Of a stretch of 64,000 nt of DNA, positions 272 through 64,000 are shown in pieces. Position 1 is the stretch's first letter. Each line of letters starts with the position of its first letter. The DNA lies in assembly GCA_010909165.1 (NCBI GenBank), contig MU008169.1, positions 992,001 to 1,056,000 on the forward strand, read 5' to 3'. Source of the DNA: Anthoceros angustus. Lineage: Eukaryota > Plantae > Anthocerotophyta. The notes under the pieces are model-generated. The model made no database searches and had not been told where the DNA came from. It was given only the letters and a program-made list of their open reading frames with translations. The position numbers and the translations under genes were made by a program.

Positions 272-2274
272 CTACTTCTCAATGTTGCACATCTGGACTA
301 CATCCATGCTGTAGTTGACATACTTTGTCCAAAACTCCTTGTATTGGGGCAAGGCAATGTCCAACCATGGCTTCATGTTCCCATTGTAGTGAATGACTGC
401 TGCTTTCCTGATTTTCTCGCTACTGATGTTAGGATTGTACCCCAAGCCCAGGACATGCCACGACCTGTCCAGAGGCTTGGTTGTCTTGTAGAAAGTAAGC
501 AAGCCTGGTGGTAGAGTCCCAAGCTTCCATAATGTGTGGTCTATGTTCTGCATGCCAATGAGAGGACACAGTAAGCACCGGACAATGCAGCCTACTCGGC
601 ACGGCACTTCAAATAAGCAACATAGTATAGGCAGGACTCACCAGATTCTGCCAGTGGTGGTACTCTTCCGTGGACTTGTGCTTTTTCCAGGCGTCCAAGT
701 CAAAAATATTCATCCCAAATGCCCAGCCACACGCACTTGGGTCAAAGCGAGAGCTGATCAGAGGGTTATCAAAATTCAAGTACTTGTCCAGTCTGTGGAA
801 GGAACCAGAGCAAGTTTCCACAGCTCCATTCACGTTACCACCCAGGTTGATGTCCCAAAGTGGCGTCAAGTCCTTCTGGACAACAACATCATCGTCCAAA
901 AATAGTATCTTGGATAGCTTCGGGTACATCTCTGGCAAGTAGAATTTGAGATAGCTGAGCATCAGATGCTTTGGGTTGCCAAACATCAGTCTACTGCTAT
1001 CCACCGTTGTATTCTCCACGTTTTTGTAGTAGTACTGCAAGTACTCCGGAGATTCCAGTTGACGCAAAAGAGGGACATAAGACGATGTCAGAAACTTGAA
1101 GTCATCCACCGACTTCACCTCCACATGAGCTTTCAACGGCGGACGCTTCTTGAACCATACTTGCATAGCTGCCACATTCATCTTGTTCGTCACTATGTGG
1201 AAGACATGCTTCTTCGTATTCTTTGTGTTTTTCACAGTAGAGTGAACCGCCACCGCTGTCCCAATCACACTATCTGAGAATATGGCATAGTGATACAGAT
1301 TAGGATCCTCAAACTGTGGGAGAGGTTCCTCCGGTCTGTACTCATCCGGCTCGGAGACACGAGCTGCCATCAGTCTCATCGACAGGCAGTGCAAACTCTT
1401 AGGTACAGACTTGGCAGCTATAAGGCTAGCAACTGCGCCGATCTTTTTCACTTTCGATAGCTGATAGTTGGTTTGAAAGAGCTGATCCTCCAACCGCTGT
1501 ATGTTGAGCTCATCATCGAAGAAATGCTTGGAATCCATGATAGCCTCCCGGGTCAACCTGAACAGCTCCTTCACATCGGTCTCGAATTTCCTGTAATGCT
1601 CCTCACTGACCTCCTCAGTCTCAAGTAAAGCCTTGTTCTCAGCTCGAGCCAGAAGCTCCGCGTAACTATCCGCCTGCTCCGAAAAAACATTCACCACCTT
1701 GGTCATGTTGAGCTTTCCCTGTCGAGCTACACCCGCATAAGCTCTGGTGATAGCAAGCCGCTCCCTGGCTTGCTTAAAGAGCTGCTGCGCCCTTATCCTG
1801 TACGGATCCGTCGATGATGACCTAATGGCGAGGAAGTTGCGAGCATACGAATGCTGGGAATCCTCACTACCTTCAACATCCACAGTTGTCCCGACCTGCC
1901 GGGAAACACCACACGCCCGTCAGCTCAGAAACAAACAGACACCACCGCAGCTGAAGCAGCTAGTCTCCACAGTCCTCACAGCAACACAGATCTAACAAAA
2001 CGCTTCAAACCAGATCCGGACCAGATCGGAGGCAATCCAGATCGGCAGCTGAAACACAATGCCAGCCACGGAGAATTGATGCAACCAAGCAGGGAACAGA
2101 ATCGGGCAAAGTAACAACCGGAACAACTCGGGAGCCGCTCCGCAGCAGCAGGCCCGCTGTGACCAGGAAGGCGAAGAAGAGCAATGCTGTGATAATGGTC
2201 CGGTAGCTGGCTCCATTGTGAGCTGCCGCATTGTTCCAGGGGCGGCTCAAGGAGCGGCTCATTCGTGCCGCCAT
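272..2274 (-). CDS. GAUT8: Galacturonosyltransferase, GT8 family, GAUT8/QUASIMODO1-like; 3 exons (2274-~2120, 1895-642, 547-272)
   Basis: Motifs AAKSVPKSLHCLSMRLM, EDPNLYHYAIFSD, ILFLDDDVVVQKDL (DxD), LWKLGTLPPGLLTFY and HYNGNMKPWLDI. An N-terminal TM helix (TIITALLFFAFLVTAGLLL). Canonical junctions at 1895, 642 and 547; the exon 1 donor is approximate. Confidence 0.93.
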
Positions 2275-17792: not shown

Positions 17793-17988
17793 CCTTTGCA
17801 CCAAGGGCATCCACTCCCTTTGCACCAAGGGCATCCACTCCCTTTAGGCACCCCATCTAAGTACCGATCTAAGCTCATGATGCTTAATCACTACGTTATT
17901 ATAAATGTGTGTCCATTTGGCCTAAGCTCAGGATGCTTAATCACGACGTTCTTATAAATGTGTGTCCATTTGGCCTAAGCCATGTGGA
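17793..17988 (-). mobile_element. Short retroposon-like family, copy D (tailless, two internal duplications)
   Basis: Matches 28683-28830, 46633-46857 and 46911-47140 (ttgcaccaagggcatccactccctttaggcaccccatctaagtaccgatc...). Confidence 0.7.
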
Positions 17989-20842: not shown

Positions 20843-22247
20843 ATGAGAATGGCTGGCGGGAACTCCAGGCCGGGGTACCAGAACGAGGCCTTGCTGCAGT
20901 GGGAGGGAAGGACGGCGGCGGAGTCCTCGAGCGCGGTGCAGTCGCAGGCCGTGAATGTGAAGGAGGAACATGTTGCATGGCCCGGCTTGCTGGCTGAGGC
21001 GGGGCGGGGCAATGAGGAAGGAGCGCGCACGGGGAGGAGGCCCGGGAGGCTGCAGCAGGGAGGCTGGATCGAGATCGCGAAGAAGGCGAAGGAGTCGCTT
21101 GGAGACAGATCATTCGCGGACCGGTTGAGGCAGAAGTTCTGCGAGACGGCCAGGCCGGAGAGCGGCGGGAGCTACCGCGACAGGCAGGGATCGGCGATGA
21201 CGCTCACGGTGCCGGCGGCCTCGGGAGCAGCCGCGGCATGGCAGAGCTCGCCGCGCCTCAGCCCCTGGGGTTCCAAGCGGGTGTCCGGCCTCCCGAGCCC
21301 GCGCGCCGTGGTCCCCTACCTCCCCGACGGCCTCGGCCTCCCGCTCAACGAGCACGACTCGGAGGACATGGTGCTCTACGGCGTGCTCGCGGAGGCGGCA
21401 ACCAAGGGCTGGTGTCCGCTTCCCGCTCCGGCTCCATCTCCAGCTCCGGCTCCAGCGCCTGTGGTGCTCACGGCGAAGCAGAAGCACGAGCTCCAGCAGC
21501 AGGCTATGGTGGAGGACATTATCCGGGAGGCCGAGGCGAAGGACGGGACGGCGGGCAAGCTCAAGCAACAAGGAGGGAACTCGAAGCCGCACTACCGGGG
21601 GGTGCGGAAGCGGCCGTGGGGGAAGTACGCAGCGGAGATCCGGGACTCGGCTCGGCAGGGGGCCAGGGTATGGCTGGGGACGTTCGACACGGCCGAACAG
21701 GCTGCCCGGGCTTACGATCGGGCGGCCTCCACCATGCGCGGCTCCCGCGCGCAGCTCAACTTCCGGCTCCTTCCGCCACTCTTCCCGCCAAGACTCCTCA
21801 GCCGGCGCGGGCGTCTGCCCTCCGACTCCCCCGCCATTCTCAGCAATGGCAGCAGCAGCAGCAGGAGGGAGGGGCGTCCGGAGCTGCAGCAGCTCTCCTA
21901 CCGGGAGCAAGCCAGGGTCGAGTCTTTCCCTGGTGGAGAAGCTGCGGGCGGCCATCAGGAAGCCCGGGGGGCAGAAGCGGGCCGCGCTGATAGCTCTCGC
22001 CCCCAGGCTCGGGAGCAGCAAGCGGTGCGCCACCAGCTCCGACGACAGCAGCTCCGGCTCCGGTTCCTCCTGCTTCAGCACGGACAGCATTGGCAGTGAG
22101 CTTTGCGCGCCGTCGTCTTCGCAAAGCGAGCGTGTCGCGGACTTGAACACCTTCTTCTCCAGCCTGGCCCAGCCGCAGCCGCAGCCGCAGCTGCCGCCTC
22201 CATCGGGGGCTCTGGACTTGGCCGTCTTAGATCTGTGTATCATATGA
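20843..22247 (+). CDS. AP2/ERF transcription factor, ERF group IX-like; single exon with two probable 1-nt frameshifts after the AP2 domain
   Basis: AP2 domain [58 protein letters not shown] and the ERF1-type motif [16 protein letters not shown]. As written, the frame ends at 22099. Confidence 0.88.
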
Positions 22248-47140: not shown

Positions 47141-47324
47141 CATCTCTCGACGTCCGATGACGATGTCCATGGACTCCATGGACATTCATGCTTCTTGCTT
47201 AGCAATATAGTAGCGTACGTGCATCCATGCATCCATTTCAGCAAGAAAGCGGCTCTGCATCGAACCATTTGGCACGTGGCATTAATTTGAAAGCCCAAAG
47301 AAATTTCCACCTACTTGTCACATT

Positions 47325-47740: not shown

Positions 47741-48839
47741 CTCTGGATGCTCTAATTGACTCAGTTAGTAGAGCTGTTGTTCAATAAGTGAAATCATATT
47801 ATTCTAAATATTAAAACGGCAATGTGGTTGGAGGAGGGGATCTTTCATGAAATCAAAGCCAAAAAGTCACATCTAAGGGATAACTAAATAAATTATGTAA
47901 TATATTTATTTTAAAATATAAACCCGTATCATTAAATTGCACCAAAATAAAAATTATTTTTATTTTAGAAAGGTTCAATGGCTTAGTATACCTAGTACAA
48001 TAGTCTAATTTATTCCCGAATCTTCTTAATTCTTGTTATGATTATTTCTTTGTATGTATGATGAGTGTTTAAGGCCATCACATGTGATCCAAATCATTGC
48101 AACACGAGTTACAACTTGTAACACTTGAAACTAGTTATTCAAAATGAGGACTCTGAAAGGTTCTAATTAGCACTGCTGAATGCAGAAAGATAATCTATAA
48201 CTACATCTAAATAGTGTACATGGAGCCGGTCCATTTATTTTATAGTGAACTTGATTGTAAATTTAGTTCATAGAAGAGGGCTTTTACAATAGGTGACACC
48301 GTAGGCCTTTTTATATGACAGGGGAATGAGTAACAACCCATTCCAGGAGTGATCCAACTCAAGGATGCTTGATCGTTAGTGTGGGTCCATTTAAATCCAA
48401 TCTACTAAGGTTGTTAGAGGTTAAATCTAAATAATCGTAAAATATATATACGATTTAATTAACATATCATGCTTAGCTGTAATCTTGACTACAAGCCTAA
48501 CTTCTGATCAAGTGGGATTATCTCCAGCATCCGATCTGATCTTCAGTTCAAAATGTTTTCCTTGTAAATGGTCCATGGTTCATGCCCAAAACCCTGAGGT
48601 GAACCGACAGAGACATCCAGACCCGACCAGGATCCAGCCTCCGATAAGTGTGTGGGAACATGAAAAGATCAGACTGATAAGAGAATGCGAGAAGTCTACG
48701 ACTGACTGTCTAGCTTCTCCAGGCGTTGCTGACCCGAAGGCTATGATGGAGCACCGAGGCTTACGTCCATCACCAGATTGTTGGTGTGAAGTGCAAGGAG
48801 CGGTGTATACGACTCCAAGTAGTTTGGTCATGCACGAGA

Positions 48840-51040
48840 ATGGCTCGAGGTGGACTGCTACTCTATCTTGATGTTTGCTTCCACTTTCTCGCATGATTCT
48901 ACATGTGCTGGCCATGGCACTCTAGGCTTAGGCTGATGACAAAGTGCAAGCATGGCTGGATTGTCAACCCTTCCTGGCTCACTTGCAGGGCAGACTCCGA
49001 GGAAGAATCCAGTGCTTGGTCGGAAGAAAGCTGCAGAAACTCCCCCATTATCCCAGCCACCAAGGTTGGTGGTCTCCTACTATGTCTAAGGGCTTGTTGT
49101 CCTTTGGATATTTATGTACGTCTACTTCGGATGAACCGAAGAGGTTTGGCATTTGGCTGGCAGTCTATGACTGTACCCCTTTCTTGTGCTGGGCTGCAGT
49201 AAGAAGCAGGCGCGTGGCGAGGCTAATCAGAGCATTGATCAGTTAAAGGATGTCACGGCCGCGAGTGGCGTAAACCTCAGGGTAAGATGTTATTTAGATT
49301 GTAGTTGTTGCCTGGGAGTGGGGATAATGTTGCTCTGTCTGTAATAGCCTCTGCATTCTTGATTCCTTCCAGGAGGAGAAAGAAGAGCAGATGCTGGCAG
49401 GACCAAGGGAAGAAAGCCGCACCCCAGAAGCAATTTCAAAAGCTGTTCAAGATGAAGAAGATAGGTTGTTTCTAGATAGAGGGTTTTTACACAAAAAACT
49501 ATATGACGTAGGCAAGCTGGCTTCTCCATCTTCTAAAAGAGTGCTGGGGGAATTGTATGCACTGGTGGTTGTGTAGGATGTGGGAAATGCTCATGAGCAA
49601 AAAACTAAACTGAACCTGTGCTGGGCCGTGCAGCTGAGGCCAAGGGATTTCGGTCTGTGGGTGATGACATGGAGAAATGTTTGTCTAAGGTATGATGTTC
49701 CTGTGTGCGCCAACTTTTGTTTTGTTTTGAGCTAAGGTCATATGCACTTAGGAGTGGCAAGTGTTTCCATCCTTCTAGGAGCTTTGTATGTAACAGAATG
49801 TAGTGTCCTTATTCTGTGCAGCTATGCCTATTGGCAGGCTACAGAGGAGTATATGCGTAGAATGTTGTACAACATAATCAAGCTCTCCCAGCAGGTACCT
49901 GCTTACTTGCACTTTCCAAGTTCAAACTGGGAGGCCACTTTGTACCATAGTCAGCAAAACTCAAGAAGATTGGTAACGGAATGTTTTGGTTTGATAGCGC
50001 TGTGATTCTGAGAAGGGCAGGCTCAGGTTCGTGGTTACAACAGATGTACAGGATCTGTTGAAAAAAAAGAAGGAAAAAGAAGCTCTGGAAAAGAAGCAGG
50101 CTGAAGAGAATGAAAGGTTGCGGAAGATGACTGAGGTAGTCTGCTTCTACTCTGATAACTTGCTGGTTGAAATCCACACTTTGCTTTGGGACAAGTTCTG
50201 TATTCTTCTGCATGTGAGAAATTGGTTGCGATTGCTGACAGTTGTGAAAAAACTGTTTTTCACTCGCCCTGAAAAAGGACAAAGGCAGGCTTACAGATGT
50301 GGAAAACGATGAGCTGCGGGCAAAAGCTCAAAAGGTACGGAAAATGGCCACTCTATCTTGAAGAGTTGTAGCTACTGTATGTTACAGTGCTCCTGACATG
50401 GTATGGCTGGTTGTGACTGGCAGGCAAAGCAAGAAAAGGAAGACAAAATGAGAGCTAATGAAGCCAACATTGCCGCAAGACGAGCAATAGGTGCTGATGA
50501 CATGCTCAGCAAGTGGACGATGCTAGCTGAACAAGGACGGCGGAAGCGGCAAGTTGAACATGCAGGTGTGTAGACAACCTGATACTTTCAAACCTGAGGA
50601 TGGTGATAATTCGAGCTTGACCAAGGACCAGATCAATTGAGCAGCACGTGGTTTGCAAAAGAGCAAGAAAGGAGACGAGAGATAGGACATACAGGTCAAG
50701 GAGGCGGACCACAGCAGGTGACGACAACTGGCACACCCCCTGGTATTCTCTCCCTTCAATCACTAGATGTGCGCTTGTTTCTCAACTTTGTCGACTGTGA
50801 ACTGGGTTCAAATTACTTTGTGTTTTGTTCATGTCATGGCCGGGCCCAGGATCTGCATCAGCGAGAGGCAGAACGTCACCTCAGGCTGGAAGGTCCCAAA
50901 CCGTCATCACCGTGAAGGACGTTCTTGCTGCTATGGAAAGGGATCCACACTTTGGGAAGAGTACGTTGCTCTACCAGGTGTATGAGATGGAGAGGAAAAC
51001 ATCTTCTGACGTTGGAGATAGAATAGCAACCAAGAGGTGA
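48840..51040 (+). CDS. TAF4: Array unit 3: chimeric gene, array micro-exon fused to TAF4 C-terminal (histone-fold) region, 352 aa, 11 exons
   Basis: Exons 48840-49, 48989-49064, 49200-281, 49373-511, 49634-689, 49838-894, 49998-50135, 50278-334, 50424-565, 50632-742 and 50850-51040 join in frame. Motifs QSIDQLKDVTAASGVNLREE, ANIAARRAIGADDMLSKW and ITVKDVLAAMERDPHFGKSTLLYQVY. The exon 10 acceptor is weak. Confidence 0.82.
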
Positions 51041-51199
51041 TTGGGCTGCTTATTTTTGAGGCCTCATTGAACCATTTGGCACCGGGGACTGATTTGTACA
51101 GTATGTTTTCATTTGAGACGTTTCGTTGAAATCAACTACATACATACATCGCACTTCCTAGCCTCTTTTGCTTGACGCTCAGAAGAAGCCTCCACTTAC

Positions 51200-51665
51200 T
51201 TACTCAGAGTCATGAAAAGTGAGCGACTTCATTGCCACTTTCAAAAGGTCATGATTTCTTACTAAGAGTGGTGCATGTTCTTAAAAAAACCATCAAAGTA
51301 TTTTGGTGCATCAAATTCATCAAGGTCACAGCACGTTGCAAGGAAGACGTTGAAATGCGAACAAGAAGACTTGGCAGCACTCTTAAGTAGGAGCAACCTC
51401 AGCATAATGAAATGGTAGCTCAAACCATCATGTCAAACCAATTGAAATACTAGCAATTGGAGCCCAAAAAAACCAGCTACCTATATTCCTGTTCTGAGCT
51501 CGAATTACTCCATGGCTCAGAACATCAGAAAATGTCAAGCTCAAAACAGCATAAACCCTAATACCCAAGAATGATGACACAATGTTGTGTGTGCAGCCAA
51601 TGAATACATGTGACACAAGGATGCATTTGCAATCATGATAAAGAAAGCTTAATAACCTTGTAAGG
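51200..51665 (-). pseudogene. Inverted GWD remnant (~37240 to ~36475 with deletions)
   Basis: Co-linear with 45190-45830. Confidence 0.8.
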
Positions 51666-51701
51666 TATACATGAAACACACCAACAACCTTATCAGATAT
51701 A

Positions 51702-52053: not shown

Positions 52054-52965
52054 TAATAACTTGCTAAGTGCGTTATTATGCTCTAATTGAAAGTTAAACT
52101 CAAGACCCCCAATTATTTGCGGGTGCTCTAACTAACTTAACTAACAGAGTTGTTGTTCAATAAGTGAAATCATATTATTCTCAAAGTTAAAAGAGCAATG
52201 GGGTTGGGAAAGGGGGGCAGAGCGAAGCTCTCTTCTTATGAAATCAAGGCCAGGAAATCACAGCTTTAAGGGATAACTAACTAAAATCAAGGCTAGAAAG
52301 TCTCATCTTAAGGGATGATTAAATAAATTCTTTGTTCAGCTGGTAAATCTTGTTATGATTATTTTTACGGTGTATGATGAGAGTGTACACCCTTCACATG
52401 TGATCCAAATCATTATCATATTTTTGACCAGTGCATCTGATATTCCCTAAAATATTGAAGCTAGATACTCAAACGGGGACTCTGAAAGATTTTAACTAGA
52501 CCTGTTGAATAGAAATAGATAATATCTAAGCAAAATTATATACCTGTGGATGATGTACAAATAGCTGGTCCATTACGTCTAATCTTTGGCCAATAACTAG
52601 TGTAGATAAGGATCTTAGAGTTCACATTTTAAATCTCCAGCATCCGATCTGATCTTAAATTTTCATTGCAAATGGTGGAAGGTTTATGCCCAAAACCTTG
52701 AAGTAGTTACCGGGTTGAGAGAAACATCCAGATCCAACCAGGATCCAGCCTCCGATATGTGTGTTGGGAACAGGAGAAGCTTGGAGTGATAGAGAATGCG
52801 AGGAGTCCAGGACTGACTGTCCAGCTTCTCCATGCGTTCATGACCGAAATTTAAGTTTGAAGAAGGCGATGATGGAGCACCCAGGCTTACGTCCATCGCC
52901 AGACCGTTGGTGTGAAGTGCAAGGAGCGGTGTATACGACTCCAAGTAGTTTGCTCATCCACGAGC

Positions 52966-53696
52966 ATGGGTTTAGGTGGTACTACTACTCTATCTTGATG
53001 TTTGCTTCAAGTTTCTAGCATGATTCTACATGTGCTGGCCATGGCACTCTAGGCTTAGGCTAATGGGGCATTAATGCTCAACTGCAGCATCGAGCTCAAT
53101 TTCTAGGCAAAATCAGCGCGACCATACCGTTCCTCTTCCCCCGGGCATTAAGAATCCCCTATGGAGATTCGAAGGTCTAGGAGTGCCCGTTGTGTACCCG
53201 CTCATCAGAAACGGCAGGAGAGAGAACCGAGTGGGGGTTCTTGTACGAGTTCATCCGCACGTAAGATGCAACACAGTCTTTCCATGCATGCTGTTCAAGC
53301 TTTTGTTCAAGCTACTAACACCAGTTGCTATGCTGCATTGCGCGAATTGGCTGGAATTTGTAAATCCAGGATGGCTGGTGCACAGTGTTCGAAGGAAGTC
53401 CGCGAAAACTGGAGCAGCTGCGATCGGATCCACGAGCCGTTGTGCTAGGGCAAGTATACCACCACAGCGCTCTGTCCATCTTGCGGCCGAAGGTGCGCGG
53501 GCAGAGGGTTATGATTCTATCGAGCTATCTGCGAGGCCGCTTGGGAGGCGTCCGGAGAATGTACTCGAATTTTGGCTCGGAGCCTCGAGCCTATGTGCTC
53601 TTGGATGTAGTCGGTGCGAACAGGAATAATAATAATGTAGTCCGAGAGTTTGTCAGTGTAAAGGTGAGTGACACGGCCTTGATACCAGACACATGA
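52966..53696 (+). CDS. Array unit 4: tandem-KOW protein, 169 aa; exons 52966-52975, 53088-53260, 53370-53696
   Basis: In-frame splicing gives MGLASS..PLPPGIKNPLWRFEGLGVPV..VGVLVRVHPH-DGWCTVFEG..LSILRPKVRGQRVMILSSYLRGRLG..AYVLLD..VSVKVSDTALIP. Confidence 0.72.
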
Positions 53697-54024
53697 GAAG
53701 CCTGAGCTTCGAATTCTCGGCGGCCGATGAAGATGTCCATGGACTCCATGGACATCCATGATTCTTGCCTAGCAACGTTATATAGCAGCGTACGTTCATC
53801 CATCTTAGCGATTGAAGTTATTGAACCATTTGCCACCATTTGTACAAGATGTTTTCATTTGAGACTTTTCGTTGAAATCGACAATGCATGTAGACATCGC
53901 CCTCCTAGCCTCTTTTGTTGACACTGGTCGGAAGGAGTACCTGATTGAGCCCTAAGTCATTGTCGAGCTCAAAACACTAGAAACTCTAGCGATCGGGTAT
54001 GGAACATACGGGAGGGTCACTCTG

Positions 54025-54890
54025 ACGTTACCATCCTCTAGCTGTCCACTTGCTGGCCCATACACAGCAGACTGCTTGCCACACACTATCCCATCGATCT
54101 GTATGTGTTTCCTTTTCATGCACAGCTTTTATGAAACCCAGCTGTATGTGTTTCCTTTTCATGCACAGCTTTTATGAAACCCAGCTCTTCAGCAACAGAC
54201 GTCGTGGGGCTACGAGGTCCTGCCTGACCAGATCCCTAACCCTTTTCCCCTCAGCTGGTACTTTGAAACAGGAACAGACAAGAGGTGGATCACGACAAAG
54301 GTGTTCTCTCTAGAGATAGATCAACACCTATGCATGACCAGGAACATGATTCCAACTTTCAGGTTAGAGAAAACCTATCCTGATGATTTCAACGAGTACG
54401 CTTTGAAATCCGGAAGCTAGGCCCTGATGGCTGATGCGGTAGTAGCATTGATGGGGTCATTCACAACCTTCCAAACACATCAATGGCAGGCTCATGGCAA
54501 GCGAGAACTAGCAAGAAAATGATGTTCGCATGCAGGAGATAGGTTAGACTCCACATCACGAATTTCAAAGGTAGCAGAACACTCATCCAAGACAATGGGA
54601 GTTAACAAGGATGCAGCAGGTTGCAAGCAAGACCTTGAAATGCAAACAAGTATACACATACGAGTATTCTGAAGTATACATAGAAGTAACCTTAGCACAA
54701 GGAAATGGTAGCTCAAAATATCTTGCCAAACCTATTGAAATACTAGCAAGGTGTACTCATTGAAAGCTCGAATTCCTACATGGCTCAGGACATCTCCATC
54801 AAAACAGCAAACGGGCCCATCGGGTATATCCTCCATGCCGCTCATCTTTAATCCCCAAAAATAATGACATGATCATGTCATGTGTGCATA
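54025..54890 (-). pseudogene. Inverted GWD remnant (~38065-37530 joined to ~36930-36640), with a 43-bp tandem duplication
   Basis: ORF 54050-54313 parallels the GWD antisense ORF 37667-38029; includes atcgggtatatcctccatgcc (GMEDIPD). Confidence 0.85.
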
Positions 54891-55880
54891 CATACCTTCC
54901 ACACATAGGCTGCCGATAGCCCATTTACAAGTGGCGGAGTTTGTAGACGTGCTTGCTATGAGCTCAAGTTTGCAGTAGCATATTGTATATATAGAAAATA
55001 GTATATATAGGAAGTAGTTTATGTACAAATATTGACAAAGCCTACACAGAAGTTTAAACGTGTTTTTTCTCTTCTACTAAAGGGGGAAGGTTTGCTTTCT
55101 TCTCTAAAAGGGCTATTCCTTCAAAGCCTTTGCAAAGAATTCTTGCTCTCAAAGACCACTCCTTCAATGTTTTGGTACAAACACTCCTTGTGCAAAATGC
55201 TTACTTCTTCAAAGCCTTTTCAAATAAAATTAATAAACTTAAAAAATAAAAAGAGTCTGCACTTTCATTACTACCTGCTTGAGGTACCTAAATTTGTTTT
55301 AAGAAAATACTTCTTCAATACCCTTCTACAAGAAAATAGTTGGTATTAATCAAAAGAAATATATTGTTTGCATTTACTGTGAGCTCAGTTGCTCCTCTTC
55401 ACTCCGACCCCCGGGTCCCCATTTGTTGTCCCTTCCTAGATGGTCTCTTTCCATCGTTCTTTCACCTCAATAAATCATCTCTTCAATCCTTTACTGTGAG
55501 AAGTATGTTGTCATTGAGATTTGAACTCAATGTGAGAAGTATGTTGTCATTGAGATTTGAACTCAATACCTCTTACTTAAAAGATACGAAGGAAGTGCTT
55601 TCCAATTAGGGCTTTAATTAGATCTGCTTGATAAAAATATATTCAAAAGTCCAATCCACTGCTGGCCTCCCATGCCGTGCCGGAACGTGAAAAGCACGGG
55701 GTGGGAATGCGAGGAGTCCAGGACCGACTGTCCAGCTTCTCCATGGCCAGGCGCGTTCATGACCCAGTGTTTGAAGAAGGAGCGCCTTGGCTTACGTCCA
55801 TCGCCGGATCGGTATCGTGCGCGTGAAGTGCAATCAAGGAGCGGAGTATACGGCTTCAAGTTGGTTGCGAAAGCAGCAGA

Positions 55881-56667
55881 ATGGGAGGTGAAGAGGATGA
55901 CTACTCTATCTTGATGTTAGCTTCAATTTTTCCGCAAGATTCTAGATCTGCTGGCCATGGGGCTCTAGGCTGAATTACGCTAATCGGCCATTCATGCTCA
56001 CCGTATATATGCATGCACCCGCGCAGGACTCAACTCAAATGCTCGGAGCAATGACATCGACCTTGGTCCTCTTCCCTCGGGCATTGACAATCCCCTATGG
56101 AGACTGGACGGTCTGATGGTCCCCGTTCTGTACCCGGTGAACAGCCGCACGGGAGAGACCGCTGCGGGAGTCCTGATGAGAGTTCATCCGCACGTAAGAT
56201 ACCTCACATTCCATGGATGCTGTTCAAATCAGTGCACGGGGTATTTGAAACTCTACTGACACCAGCTGCCATGCTGCATCGCCTGCATTGGCGGTGGCTG
56301 GAATTTGTCATTGCAGAATGGCCTGTGCACCGTGTTCCACGGAACTCGGCCACAACTGTTGCGAGTGCTGCGAGCGGAGCCGGATCCAGGCTTGTCAACA
56401 ACAGCGTGGCCAGGCGGGGAGTACCACTACAGCACGTTGTCCATCTTGCAGCCTACTGTGCGCGGCGAGAGGGTTATGCTTCTGTCGAGCCATATGCGAG
56501 GCCGCTTCGGAATCGTTCGGGACATCGTCTACTGGCGTGACGCAGAGCCTGACGCGTATGTGATCATGGATAATGGCGGTGCGAGCAGGAGTAAGCATGA
56601 TGTCCCAAAGCTAGAGCGTGTCAGGGTGAGGGACCTGGCCAGCGTCCGAGATGAACGAGAGGCCTGA
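55881..56667 (+). CDS. Array unit 5: tandem-KOW protein, 174 aa; exons 55881-55887, 56027-56193, 56317-56667
   Basis: In-frame splicing gives MGGLNS..PLPSGIDNPLWRLDGLMVPV..AGVLMRVHPH-NGLCTVFHG..LSILQPTVRGERVMLLSSHMRGRFGIV..DAYVIMD..RVRVRDLA. A further exon-3 scrap lies at about 56745-56835. Confidence 0.72.
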
Positions 56668-60500: not shown

Positions 60501-62025
60501 TTTGGACGCACGCCAACCATGTCTTGTGGGAGGAGATGAACGACCTCTACATCATCGAGGACAGTGATCATGGGGGTTAGGACTGGTGGTCATGTGCTTT
60601 AGGCACCGTGGAGCAGGGGTTTTGATAGGACTTGATGTACGAGGCCTTGAGGAGGACTTGAGAAGGCGAAAATGGGCGGCGGAGGCGGCCGCCTGTGCGA
60701 ACGGAGGCCGTGGCCACCGTGAGACACCTCGGCCGGAGTGCGTGCAATTGCAAAATTGGGAGCGTACAAGGCGGGAGGCGGGAGGCGGAGGAGGCGGGCG
60801 GGCGGAGGCGGGCGGAGGCGGCGGCGGCGGCGGCGGGCGGGAGGCGGGCGGAGGCGGAGGCTCGGGAGGCGGCGCGACTACGAGGAATCGGACACGGTGT
60901 CGGAAGCGCAAGCCCGGTGCCTCCGGCCGAATGCAACGGCTCTGGAGGCGGCGGCGGGCGGAGGCGGAGGCGATGAGGCAGCGGAATGCTCGGCGTGGAG
61001 GCCATGGAGGGCACAATTAAGGTTCTCCGGATGATCAAGCGCATGGATGGAGGGAAGTAGGCGTAGGCGTCGTCATCCCTTGTGCTCGAGTTGCACATGT
61101 TTTGGTTTTGCATAGGGGCGAGGCATGCGGGAAGGCCGCAGAGGGAGATAGGGTTTGATGCTATTGCAATTTTGCGATGTGTGCGTGGACATCCTTTTGA
61201 TGAATGGAATGGCACCCTTATCATGTGAACGGCTGCGTTGGAGGGACCGTAAACTTTGTTGGTGAGGTATCGACACTGTGGTCTCATGTCCGAATCGCTT
61301 CACTTTCTTGGTGCCATCATCTCGCATTTGTGAAGCATGGAAGGATGTCCTACTCCGTCGTGGGATCGGAGTGGTAGAACAAATTTAAGCGTGGATTCCC
61401 CAAATCCCACCACGGAGTCGCCACATGCACCCGATTTCTTGAGGCAATCAGGCGGCTTCTATGTTCCAAAGAACATTTCAAACCCTCCACGCCACGTGTC
61501 AGCGTCTTCTTAGCAGGACAATGGAATCGTGATTTTGTGAGGAGCCTATCATCTTTGGAAACATTGAGAAGGACGATCGTGCTCGCCACGGTAAAGCCTC
61601 TTTCGAATGAAAACAACATGGCCGGGTGCGACCATCATTGCATTCGCATACCATGGCGGCCGAGGTAGGGTTCGGCAACCACCGGTGGTTGTGACGTGTT
61701 AGGGTTTGCCATCCATGGCGGGCCATGGAAGAAAACTTTATGGCGGAAGGTAGGGTGGAAGGTGAAAACAATGTGTCACGGCTCTTTGTTTTGAAAGTTG
61801 CAAGGACAAAACATTTTCAACCGTACACCCTTTTCGAGGAGGCGTGTGTGTCCCCTTTGGTGCTTGGCATTTGTTGGTTAGGGCGCCAAAGCGGCCATGT
61901 GACCATGTCTTTGTAAAAAGATCATCTTTGGAATCTCTGACATATTCCTCAAGATCCCCACGGCTTGCATGGGTTTCGCGAAAAAAAAAATGTCCCATCC
62001 CCTCTGTCCCCTTTGGTATGCCATA
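57087..62025. mobile_element. DNA transposon with ~42-bp TIRs and 6-bp TSD (IS3EU-like termini); interior GC-rich and partly duplicated
   Basis: GAATAG|TATGGCATACCAAAGAGGACAGAGGGGACGGACATTTTTTTT ... AAAAAAAATGTCCCATCCCCTCTGTCCCCTTTGGTATGCCATA|GAATAG. No transposase recognised. Confidence 0.8.
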
Positions 62026-64000
62026 GAATAGCCGTTAATTCTCATTATACCCTCTATATAACTTTGTCAATTCAGTCTCATTCCATGATAAAAATTCATC
62101 CTTAGTGGACAAAATTTTTCTTCTTCTTCTAAAATAATTTATTTCTTTAAATAAATTTACAAACTGTATAAATATTTTAAATATATATAAATTTTTATAT
62201 TTTAATAAATTTATATATTTAATAAATATTTGAAAATATACATGGAAGTCTGCATTGGGAATGAATAACTCCTAGGGCACCTAACAATTGGCGACCCGCC
62301 GGAGCCCAAGGCAGGATGTTTAGAGCTGGCAGCCCCCGTAAGACCATGACGTTGGGGTATTGGTGGCATCCCATCCGAGCATTGCTCCGCACGCAGCTGA
62401 GCCTTACTGAGGAGGACTTGAGAAGGACGATCGTGCTCGCCACGGTGAAGCAAGAGCTGCTCGAATGAAAACAACATGGTGTACTGCCGACCATCATTGC
62501 ATTCGCATACCATGGCGCGAGGTAGGGTTCGGCAACCACCTGGTGTGGTCGGCAGCGTGTTAGGGTTTGCCATCCATGGCGGGCCATGGAAGAAAACTTT
62601 ATGGCGGAAGGTAGGGTGGAAGGTGAAAACAATGTGTCACGGCTCTTTGTTTTGAAAGTTGCAAGGACAAAACATTTTCAACCGTACACCCTTTTCGAGG
62701 AGGCGTGTGTGTCCCCTTTGGTGCTTGGTTGGTTAGGGCGCCAAAGCGGCCATGTGACCATGTCTTTGTAAAAAGATACCGTCTTTGGAATCTCTGGCAT
62801 ATTCCTCAAGATCCCCACGGCTTGCATGGGTTTCATGAAAAAAAATGTCCCATCCTCATCCCCTTTGGTATGCCATAGAATAGCCGTTAATTCTCATTAT
62901 ACCCTCTATATAACTTTGTCAATTCGGTCTCATTCCATGATAAAATTCATCCTTAGTGGACAAAATTTTCTTCTTCTTCTAAAATAATTTATTTCTTTAA
63001 TAAATTTACAAACTGTATAAATATTTTAAATATATATAAATTTTTATATTTTAATAAATTTATATATTTAATAAATATTTGAAAATATACATGGAAGTCT
63101 GCATTGGGAATGAATAACTCCTAGGGCACCTAACAATTGGCGACCCGCCGGAGCCCAAGGCAGGATGTTTAGAGCTGGCAGCCCCCGTAAGACCATGACG
63201 TTGGGGTATTGGTGGCATCCCATCCGAGCATTGCTCCGTCCGCACGCAGCTGAGCCTTACTGAGGAGGAGTTGCTGTCGTGATACAGGATGAAACGGCTC
63301 TTCCGTGTCGGGTGCTGCTGTAGATGCCTTTGCTGCAGAGCTGAACAGAGATGTTATTGGCGGAAGAGTTGGAGCGGAGGTTGCGGAAGCCGGTTACGGG
63401 CCTGGTCGTGTGGGAATGGGAATCCGCAAGCTGTACGTCAGGCCACGCCCATCGGTTCTGGTGCGCCTGGTTAGGGTGACAGAGGTGAGACCACAAGGCA
63501 CAGGAGGGTGGTTGGGGTGTCATGGTGTCGCAAATCGCGGGGGTCCGTCACAGTTGGCCACGTCCTCATTGAGGTTTTTGTTTAGGCTAACCAGGTTTTG
63601 TGCTGTGATTGCACAGGTCCCTCCCCATGGCGGAGGCGGGGAGGAGGAGGCGGGAGGCGGAAGGGTGGAGGGCACCTTCCCTCCCCATGGCGGCGGAGGA
63701 GGCGAAGGAAGGGTGGAGGCGGCGGAGGCGGCGGAGGCGGGAGGGCACCTTGCCCTCCCCCATGGCGGCGGAGGAGGAGGCGGGAGGCGGAGGCTCGGGA
63801 GGCGGGGAGGGCACGGTGGCCTCCCGTGGCGGCAACGCCCTTGAGGCCGTAGGCAGCGGGGAAAACATATTCCCTCCCCATGGCGGAGGCTCGGGAGGCG
63901 GCGAGCAGGAGGAGGAGGAGGAGGGCACCTTGCCCTCCCCATGGCGCGAGGTAGGGTTCGGCAACCACCTGGTGTGGTCGGCAGCGTGTTAGGGTTTGCC
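58555..64000. repeat. Re-iterated copies of the element ends and flanks (second left end ~58765, second right end ~62878, third approach at 63945-64000)
   Basis: 56870-57070 is about identical to 58555-58755, and 62026-62410 to 62880-63270. GC-rich parts differ by many indels. Confidence 0.75.

Follow-up and report, generated by a model that had tools for sequence, protein, structure and literature searches.

A TAF4 gene fragment in place of the KOW coding body in one unit of a tandem gene array of the hornwort Anthoceros angustus

A stretch of 64,000 nucleotides from the hornwort Anthoceros angustus (assembly GCA_010909165.1, contig MU008169.1, positions 992,001 to 1,056,000 of the forward strand), referred to here as the window and numbered from its first letter, contains a tandem array of small KOW-domain genes. 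In the third unit of this array (unit 3) the back half of a gene for the TFIID subunit TAF4 replaces the KOW coding body as a DNA-level swap, and this finding is well supported. With respect to function, we see an even chance that unit 3 is a chimeric gene whose TAF4 frame is selected and whose product would act as a truncated TAF4.

The array and the two junctions of unit 3

Comparison of the window with itself placed the starts of the diverged array units at approximately 43.2, 45.8 (partial), 48.4, 52.6 and 55.7 kb. The array lies between a glucan-water-dikinase (GWD) gene upstream and a TAF4 exon-2-like piece downstream, and pieces of both are found inside it. By self-blastn the leader of unit 3 (48520-48938) was 82% identical to that of unit 4 (52633-53065), with further partners at 43158-43657 (71%), 45830-45949 (83%) and 55705-55971 (72%). 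On alignment of the units the likeness between unit 3 and its sisters stopped after ...CTTAGGCT at 48937/48938, a position which lies within intron 1 of the sister units. The 2.13 kb which follow (48939-51065, forward strand) were single-copy in the window by self-blastn, and at 51066 the 3' trailer of the array was back, with 51066-51179 resembling unit 4 at 53820-53925 (80%) and unit 1 at approximately 44435-44550. Beyond the trailer, the shared spacer at 51211-51669 matches 45188-45809. This second junction is 25 nt past the TAF4 stop codon (TGA, 51038-51040), and the trailer is entered approximately 50 nt downstream of the KOW stop, as measured in unit 1. What unit 3 has lost is the KOW body from approximately 90 nt into intron 1 to approximately 50 nt beyond the stop codon. 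A first-pass annotation of this DNA had described unit 3 as array sequence up to about 48937, then TAF4, then array trailer, and both self-blastn and the alignments agree with that order, the return being placed at 51066.

A micro-exon layout of the form ATG...AG/GT is preserved in units 1-4 when these are aligned, and joining the micro-exon to a phase-1 acceptor fits the KOW frame of units 1, 2 and 4. Because of this fit a micro-exon start, as a predicted splice, is plausible for the array and may extend to unit 3. A coding leader was considered as well and rejected, since units 3 and 4 differ by a 1-nt indel which interrupts the open frame across the leader.

The features of unit 3 and its neighbours, with the evidence for each, are as follows.

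48423-48839 (+): array leader of unit 3, the non-coding 5' region common to units 1, 4 and 5 (self-blastn, alignment; the 1-nt indel between units 3 and 4 speaks against coding)
48840-48849 (+): putative start micro-exon ATGGCTCGAG, donor GT at 48850 (ATG...AG/GT kept in units 1-4; predicted splice)
48850-48938 (+): array-derived 5' part of intron 1 (alignment, blastn)
48939-51065 (+): TAF4-derived genomic block, comprising the last 125 nt of a former exon, nine introns, nine more exons, the stop and 25 nt of 3' untranslated region (UTR) (self-blastn, Pfam, ortholog comparison)
48952-48954 (+): alternative in-frame ATG in TAF4-derived sequence, A at -3 and G at +4 (sequence; frame open from 48940)
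48989-49064 (+): model exon 2, with a phase-1 cryptic AG acceptor within a former TAF4 exon (exon comparison)
49200-49281 (+): model exon 3 (intron positions and phases as in Riccia and Sphagnum)
49373-49511 (+): model exon 4, which requires a GC donor (TAG/GCAAGC), the ancestral GT position being gone (exon comparison)
49634-49689 (+): model exon 5, 56 nt as in Riccia and Sphagnum (exon comparison)
49838-49894 (+): model exon 6, 57 nt as in Riccia and Sphagnum (exon comparison)
49998-50135 (+): model exon 7 (Pfam, exon comparison)
50278-50334 (+): model exon 8, acceptor 6 nt further downstream, the ancestral cAG being cTG here (exon comparison)
50424-50565 (+): model exon 9 (Pfam, exon comparison)
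50632-50742 (+): model exon 10, low-complexity linker; acceptor ambiguous between 50616, 50626, 50632, 50642 and 50645 (frame model)
50850-51040 (+): model exon 11, conserved C-terminal domain, stop TGA at 51038-51040 (Pfam, exon comparison)
51066-51179 (+): array 3' trailer, matching 53820-53925 and approximately 44435-44550, downstream of the KOW stops (self-blastn, alignment)
51211-51669 (+): remainder of unit 3, spacer with an inverted, decayed GWD exon copy (self-blastn, GWD comparison)
63288-63483 (+): TAF4 exon-2-like segment with an N-terminal conserved motif (tblastn with full-length TAF4s)

Two further observations concern the array itself. The partial unit 2 (45830-46470) consists of the leader and first KOW exon in forward orientation followed by an inverted second KOW exon (46236-46461 versus 53556-53334, 83%). 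The 12-mer ACTCTATCTTGA is exact in intron 1 of units 2-5, carries one mismatch in unit 1 and also occurs inside TAF4 intron 8 (forward-strand sites 43585, 45870, 48860, 52987, 55903 and 50350); seven window matches at no more than one mismatch compare with 0.3 expected, the likeness ends by approximately 14 nt, and the recurrence may be chance or a small common motif.

TAF4 origin of the block and a possible parent gene

Three exons of the block matched Pfam PF05236 singly (E 2.7e-5, 2.6e-3 and 0.12), all under the 33-bit whole-protein cut-off, being pieces. Residues 7-340 of the spliced model were 53% identical to Sphagnum TAF4 (blastp E ~1e-94), and identity of the model to liverwort TAF4 was 49%. 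The last exon, used as query against 1.8 billion representatives, recovered the Riccia fluitans TAF4 among three matches in all. A profile made from Sphagnum TAF4 and the window exons matched human TAF4 at 800-1013 and 1032-1083 in solved TFIID structures, and model exons 3-6 and exon 11 align with the histone-fold region and the conserved C-terminal domain of plant TAF4. Judged by these comparisons, the block is the histone fold, linker and conserved C-terminal domain of TAF4. The histone fold and conserved C-terminal domain form the essential, TAF12-pairing part of yeast Taf4 (PMC6220335), and the RST domain is the module of plant TAF4 which binds transcription factors (PMC6672047). No RST domain (PF12174) was matched anywhere in the 64-kb window by tblastn with 11 full-length TAF4 proteins, in agreement with the first-pass annotation, which had noted its absence. 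That annotation had also named separate upstream TAF4 exons as a case that would undo its reading, and tblastn with liverwort, moss, lycophyte, fern and seed-plant TAF4s found no TAF4 N-terminal exon within the 48 kb upstream of the block.

In a phylogenetic tree the branch of the window sequence was long (1.17), and its placement relative to bryophytes, lycophytes and ferns was not resolved; path lengths of ferns were similar, so that the tree alone does not show acceleration. The exon fragments were scattered in the MAFFT alignment and only cleanly placed exons were retained. Protein searches for homologues, including one profile seeded with the window exons, returned nothing closer than 53% full-length and no parent of the block, and such searches could miss the product of unit 3.

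For comparison of exon structure the TAF4 loci of Riccia and Sphagnum tenellum were retrieved and their exons mapped exactly. The nine introns of the block correspond in position and phase to the last nine introns of both genes. Exon lengths in the block, set against Riccia/Sphagnum, were 82 versus 91/88, 139 versus 136, 56 and 57 in all three, 138 versus 144, 57 versus 63 and 142 versus 142/145, the differences all being multiples of 3. Because the nine introns match those of the two genes, the block was copied as genomic DNA, as the first-pass annotation had proposed for the C-terminal half of TAF4, and a processed retrocopy is ruled out by their retention.

The 5' breakpoint falls inside an exon. 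The 76-nt model exon 2 represents only the 3' end of an exon of 260 nt in Riccia and 284 nt in Sphagnum, the TAF4 frame is open from 48940, directly past a TGA at 48937-48939, and the alignment with the Riccia exon is gap-free from the junction to the exon's end. Since TAF4 homology reaches the junction in frame, the AG ending at 48988 is a cryptic acceptor in former coding sequence; the first-pass annotation had taken 48989 for an acceptor brought in with TAF4, and on this point it has to be revised. This AG has the best pyrimidine tract among those after the junction, and two earlier AGs (exon start at 48945 or 48951) are out of frame. That acceptor 48989 is in frame is unremarkable, however, because 4 of the 10 AGs in the open frame after the junction are in frame.

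With respect to the parent of the block, the segment at 63288-63483 (forward strand), 12 kb downstream, was matched in tblastn by the TAF4 N-termini of at least eight species. It contains VSGAAVDAF, identical at 9/9 positions to moss TAF4, and in position, phase-0 acceptor and size it corresponds to TAF4 exon 2. In the assembly a single nucleotide in the A-run at 63291-63294 breaks the frame of the segment, which may be either a real lesion or a homopolymer error. TAF4 exon 1 was looked for upstream of the segment and not found; the window ends 517 nt past it. We take as the simplest reading that a full-length TAF4, probably the donor, begins at the window's right edge. This exon-2-like piece would then be the start of the parental gene presumed by the first-pass annotation, and the remainder would lie beyond the window end. 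Directly upstream of the segment there is a tandem duplication of approximately 850 bp (61695-63244, blocks 96-100% identical), and part of the G-rich repeats at 63600-64000 recurs at 62449-62560.

Reading frame and constraint

The ATG micro-exon (48840-48849, 10 nt) and the ten TAF4-derived exons form an uninterrupted frame of 349-358 aa, the length being set by the choice among the five exon 10 acceptors. With acceptor 50632, one of those five choices, the ten exons and 352 aa of the first-pass annotation were reproduced, giving 1056 coding nt with no stop codon or frameshift. All introns of the model are GT-AG except intron 4, which has a GC donor (TAG/GCAAGC at 49511/49512). At exon 4 the ancestral donor GT is gone and this GC donor, 3 nt downstream, substitutes for it; use of a rival GT at 49508, 4 nt before the GC donor (49512), would break the frame. 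At exon 8 the ancestral acceptor cAG has become cTG, and the next AG, 6 nt downstream, is in frame (50277/50278), so that both lost ancestral splice sites have in-frame substitutes. As an alternative start, the internal ATG at 48952, which is in frame and in good context (A at -3, G at +4), could serve for a protein of approximately 361 aa with no micro-exon splice.

Constraint on this frame was assessed at 96 positions for which conservation among 117 canonical plant TAF4s is 95% or higher. The block keeps 73 of them, compared with 85-96 in canonical proteins, and approximately half of the replacements are conservative. Two other truncated plant TAF4s also keep fewer than the canonical proteins (Selaginella 74/96, Ceratopteris 65/96). 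When neutral change was simulated at 12-23% excess, the frame stayed free of stops in approximately 13% to 1% of cases, with indels not counted. As a control within the array we used the copies of GWD, identified by Pfam GWD1_pHisD, in which the phosphohistidine and nucleotide-binding exons recur inverted at 44653-45777, 51288-51558 and 54016-54888 (versus 36604-38063). Approximately 720 nt of these copies have accumulated 22 indels, 17 of them frame-breaking, and several stops, whereas the TAF4 block has none in 1056 nt. By this measure the GWD copies in the array trailers are dead fragments, and the intact TAF4 frame beside them weakly favours selection. The argument assumes two things, first that the parent matches other plant TAF4s in its degree of conservation and second that the GWD copies do not greatly predate the insertion.

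Several other features of the window were recorded. Between the partial unit 2 and unit 3 there is a near-perfect palindrome of approximately 500 nt (46635-47141; 81% over 520 nt against its own reverse complement), with related pieces of 135-140 nt at 28707-28833 and 17796-17864; from its sequence it may be an element resembling a miniature inverted-repeat transposable element. Two ordinary plant genes are present, an AP2/ERF gene at 20843-22099 (+), probably intronless, and a GT8 (GAUT-like) glycosyltransferase gene with a large exon at 609-1883 (-). The base composition of the window is approximately 49% G+C, which, like the deep, unresolved placement in the TAF4 tree, fits a hornwort.

Explanations and comparison with known systems

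The explanation to which we give even weight starts from a non-homologous, DNA-level replacement, for example break repair or template switching which copied nearby sequence, the template being the TAF4 gene whose N-terminal exon sits 12 kb downstream. A local non-homologous rearrangement is inferred because the block has neither terminal inverted repeats nor target-site duplications at its flanks. The product would be a chimeric gene in which the KOW leader, presumably with its promoter, and the KOW 3' UTR surround a TAF4 frame. It would encode a TAF4 of 350-360 aa which lacks the RST domain and Q-rich region and keeps the histone fold, linker and C-terminal domain, all of the portion which pairs with TAF12 and is incorporated into TFIID. 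Translation would start either at the internal ATG (48952) or in the array micro-exon, spliced in that case to the cryptic acceptor (48989). The copy would be held open by selection under relaxed or altered constraint, and the variant TAF4 would enter TFIID without the activator-binding RST domain. A stronger form, a hornwort-specific expressed 'TAF4-C' under the KOW-gene promoter which selection has kept, which competes with full-length TAF4 for TAF12 and which leaves TFIID blind to RST-binding activators, we consider unlikely; the first-pass annotation had raised a competitor or alternative TAF4 as a possibility. The further claim of that annotation, that both payloads of the array are parts of the Pol II machinery, is not supported, the KOW match scoring 21.8 bits against a Pfam cut-off of 22.3 and the links to the elongation factor SPT5 being weak leads.

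A selected frame has to be weighed against the possibility, which we take seriously while placing it below an even chance, that the block is dead debris, a partial TAF4 duplicate in a rearrangement-prone array, with unit 3 a pseudogene whose frame is intact through youth or luck. A number of observations count in that direction. The frame relies on a first acceptor which is cryptic and in frame no more than by chance, or else on the internal ATG; it also requires both replacements for lost ancestral sites, a GC donor, which is a rare type and has an out-of-frame GT as competitor 4 nt upstream, and a shifted acceptor whose pyrimidine tract is poor. Approximately one quarter of the ultra-conserved positions (23/96) are not kept, the array is a mosaic which also holds plainly dead, clearly decayed fragments of a neighbouring gene, and no annotated or transcript-derived product of unit 3 was found in protein database searches. 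If the insertion is young or the TAF4 of this lineage unusually diverged, the intact frame is uninformative on function. Against debris stand the 1056 nt with no stop or frameshift, exon-length differences which are all multiples of 3, the in-frame replacement of both lost splice sites, the rarity with which simulated neutral change of the implied size keeps the frame open, and the heavy decay of the GWD fragments in the same array. The good conservation of the TAF4 exon-2-like neighbour, moreover, suggests that TAF4 in this lineage is not unusually diverged and that the change arose in the copy.

The remaining alternatives question whether unit 3 is a separate chimera at all. That the block belongs, as its 3' part, to a larger transcription unit with 5' exons elsewhere, or that it is the only working TAF4 C-terminal half of the genome with the 63.3-kb locus as its broken remainder, seems to us quite improbable. 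The frame break of 1 nt at 63288-63483, the missing exon 1 and the lack of a canonical hornwort TAF4 among the protein search matches would fit it, but the break lies in a homopolymer and may be an assembly error, and the N-terminal piece is downstream of the block, not upstream. The 48 kb upstream hold no TAF4 N-terminal or RST exon, and the block opens mid-exon right after array sequence with an in-frame stop at 48937-48939. Tandem arrays are prone to mis-assembly, and a mis-join or collapse could in principle have made the order of leader, TAF4 and trailer; we regard this as very improbable indeed, since the units are only 70-83% alike and too diverged to collapse, the sequence re-enters the trailer of unit 3 in the correct order and orientation, and a single false join cannot give two clean junctions which bracket exactly the coding body.

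If expressed, the chimeric unit 3 would offer a clean and datable case of gene birth through local shuffling at the DNA level, in a land-plant lineage which diverged early. Its product, a core TFIID subunit truncated by nature, would then allow the contribution of the plant-specific RST domain to be examined. Were the 'TAF4-C' reading true, it would represent a natural dominant modifier of a general transcription factor, made by local exon shuffling. Judged on its DNA structure, unit 3 is a tidy curiosity rather than a surprise.

Chimeric genes formed by partial duplication are a known class, and mosaics of gene fragments are common in tandem arrays. Like chimeric genes made by DNA-level partial duplication, unit 3 has an intron-keeping genomic fragment flanked by the 5' and 3' regions of a gene unrelated to it, with the likely donor nearby; it departs from typical cases in that the breakpoint lies inside a donor exon, so that a cryptic acceptor or internal ATG is required, and in that the chimera is known here from DNA alone. 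Capture by Pack-MULEs or Helitrons similarly places an intron-bearing gene fragment between shared flanks which recur with another payload. This candidate was rejected, as inspection of the block junctions and comparison of leader with trailer revealed neither terminal inverted repeats nor a target-site duplication nor Helitron ends, and the flanks of unit 3, in contrast to those of such elements, belong to a tandem array with homologous spacers.

Short TAF4 proteins with the C-terminal domain only are annotated in several plants, as seen in the protein homologue searches. The short RST-less models of Ceratopteris (289 aa) and Medicago (311 aa) carry PF05236 only, as would the product of unit 3, and the truncated TAF4s of Ceratopteris and Selaginella (433 aa) have long branches like the window sequence. 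These are independent events in other lineages, many of them possibly partial annotations, and none is known inside a KOW-gene array or with a foreign leader. Yeast Taf4, at 388 aa, offers a minimal core for comparison. The region retained in unit 3 is the part which pairs with TAF12 and is essential in yeast (PMC6220335), but yeast Taf4 is the sole canonical subunit, whereas the product of unit 3 would come in addition to a probable full-length TAF4, as a diverged paralogue of it. In this respect it recalls TAF4b (vertebrate TAF4B, and TAF4b of Arabidopsis and Brassica), where a second TAF4-type subunit could specialise TFIID, as the product of unit 3 might; the TAF4b proteins, however, are full-length paralogues which have the activator-binding domain and arose by whole-gene duplication (PMC6672047), whereas unit 3 carries a truncated fragment.

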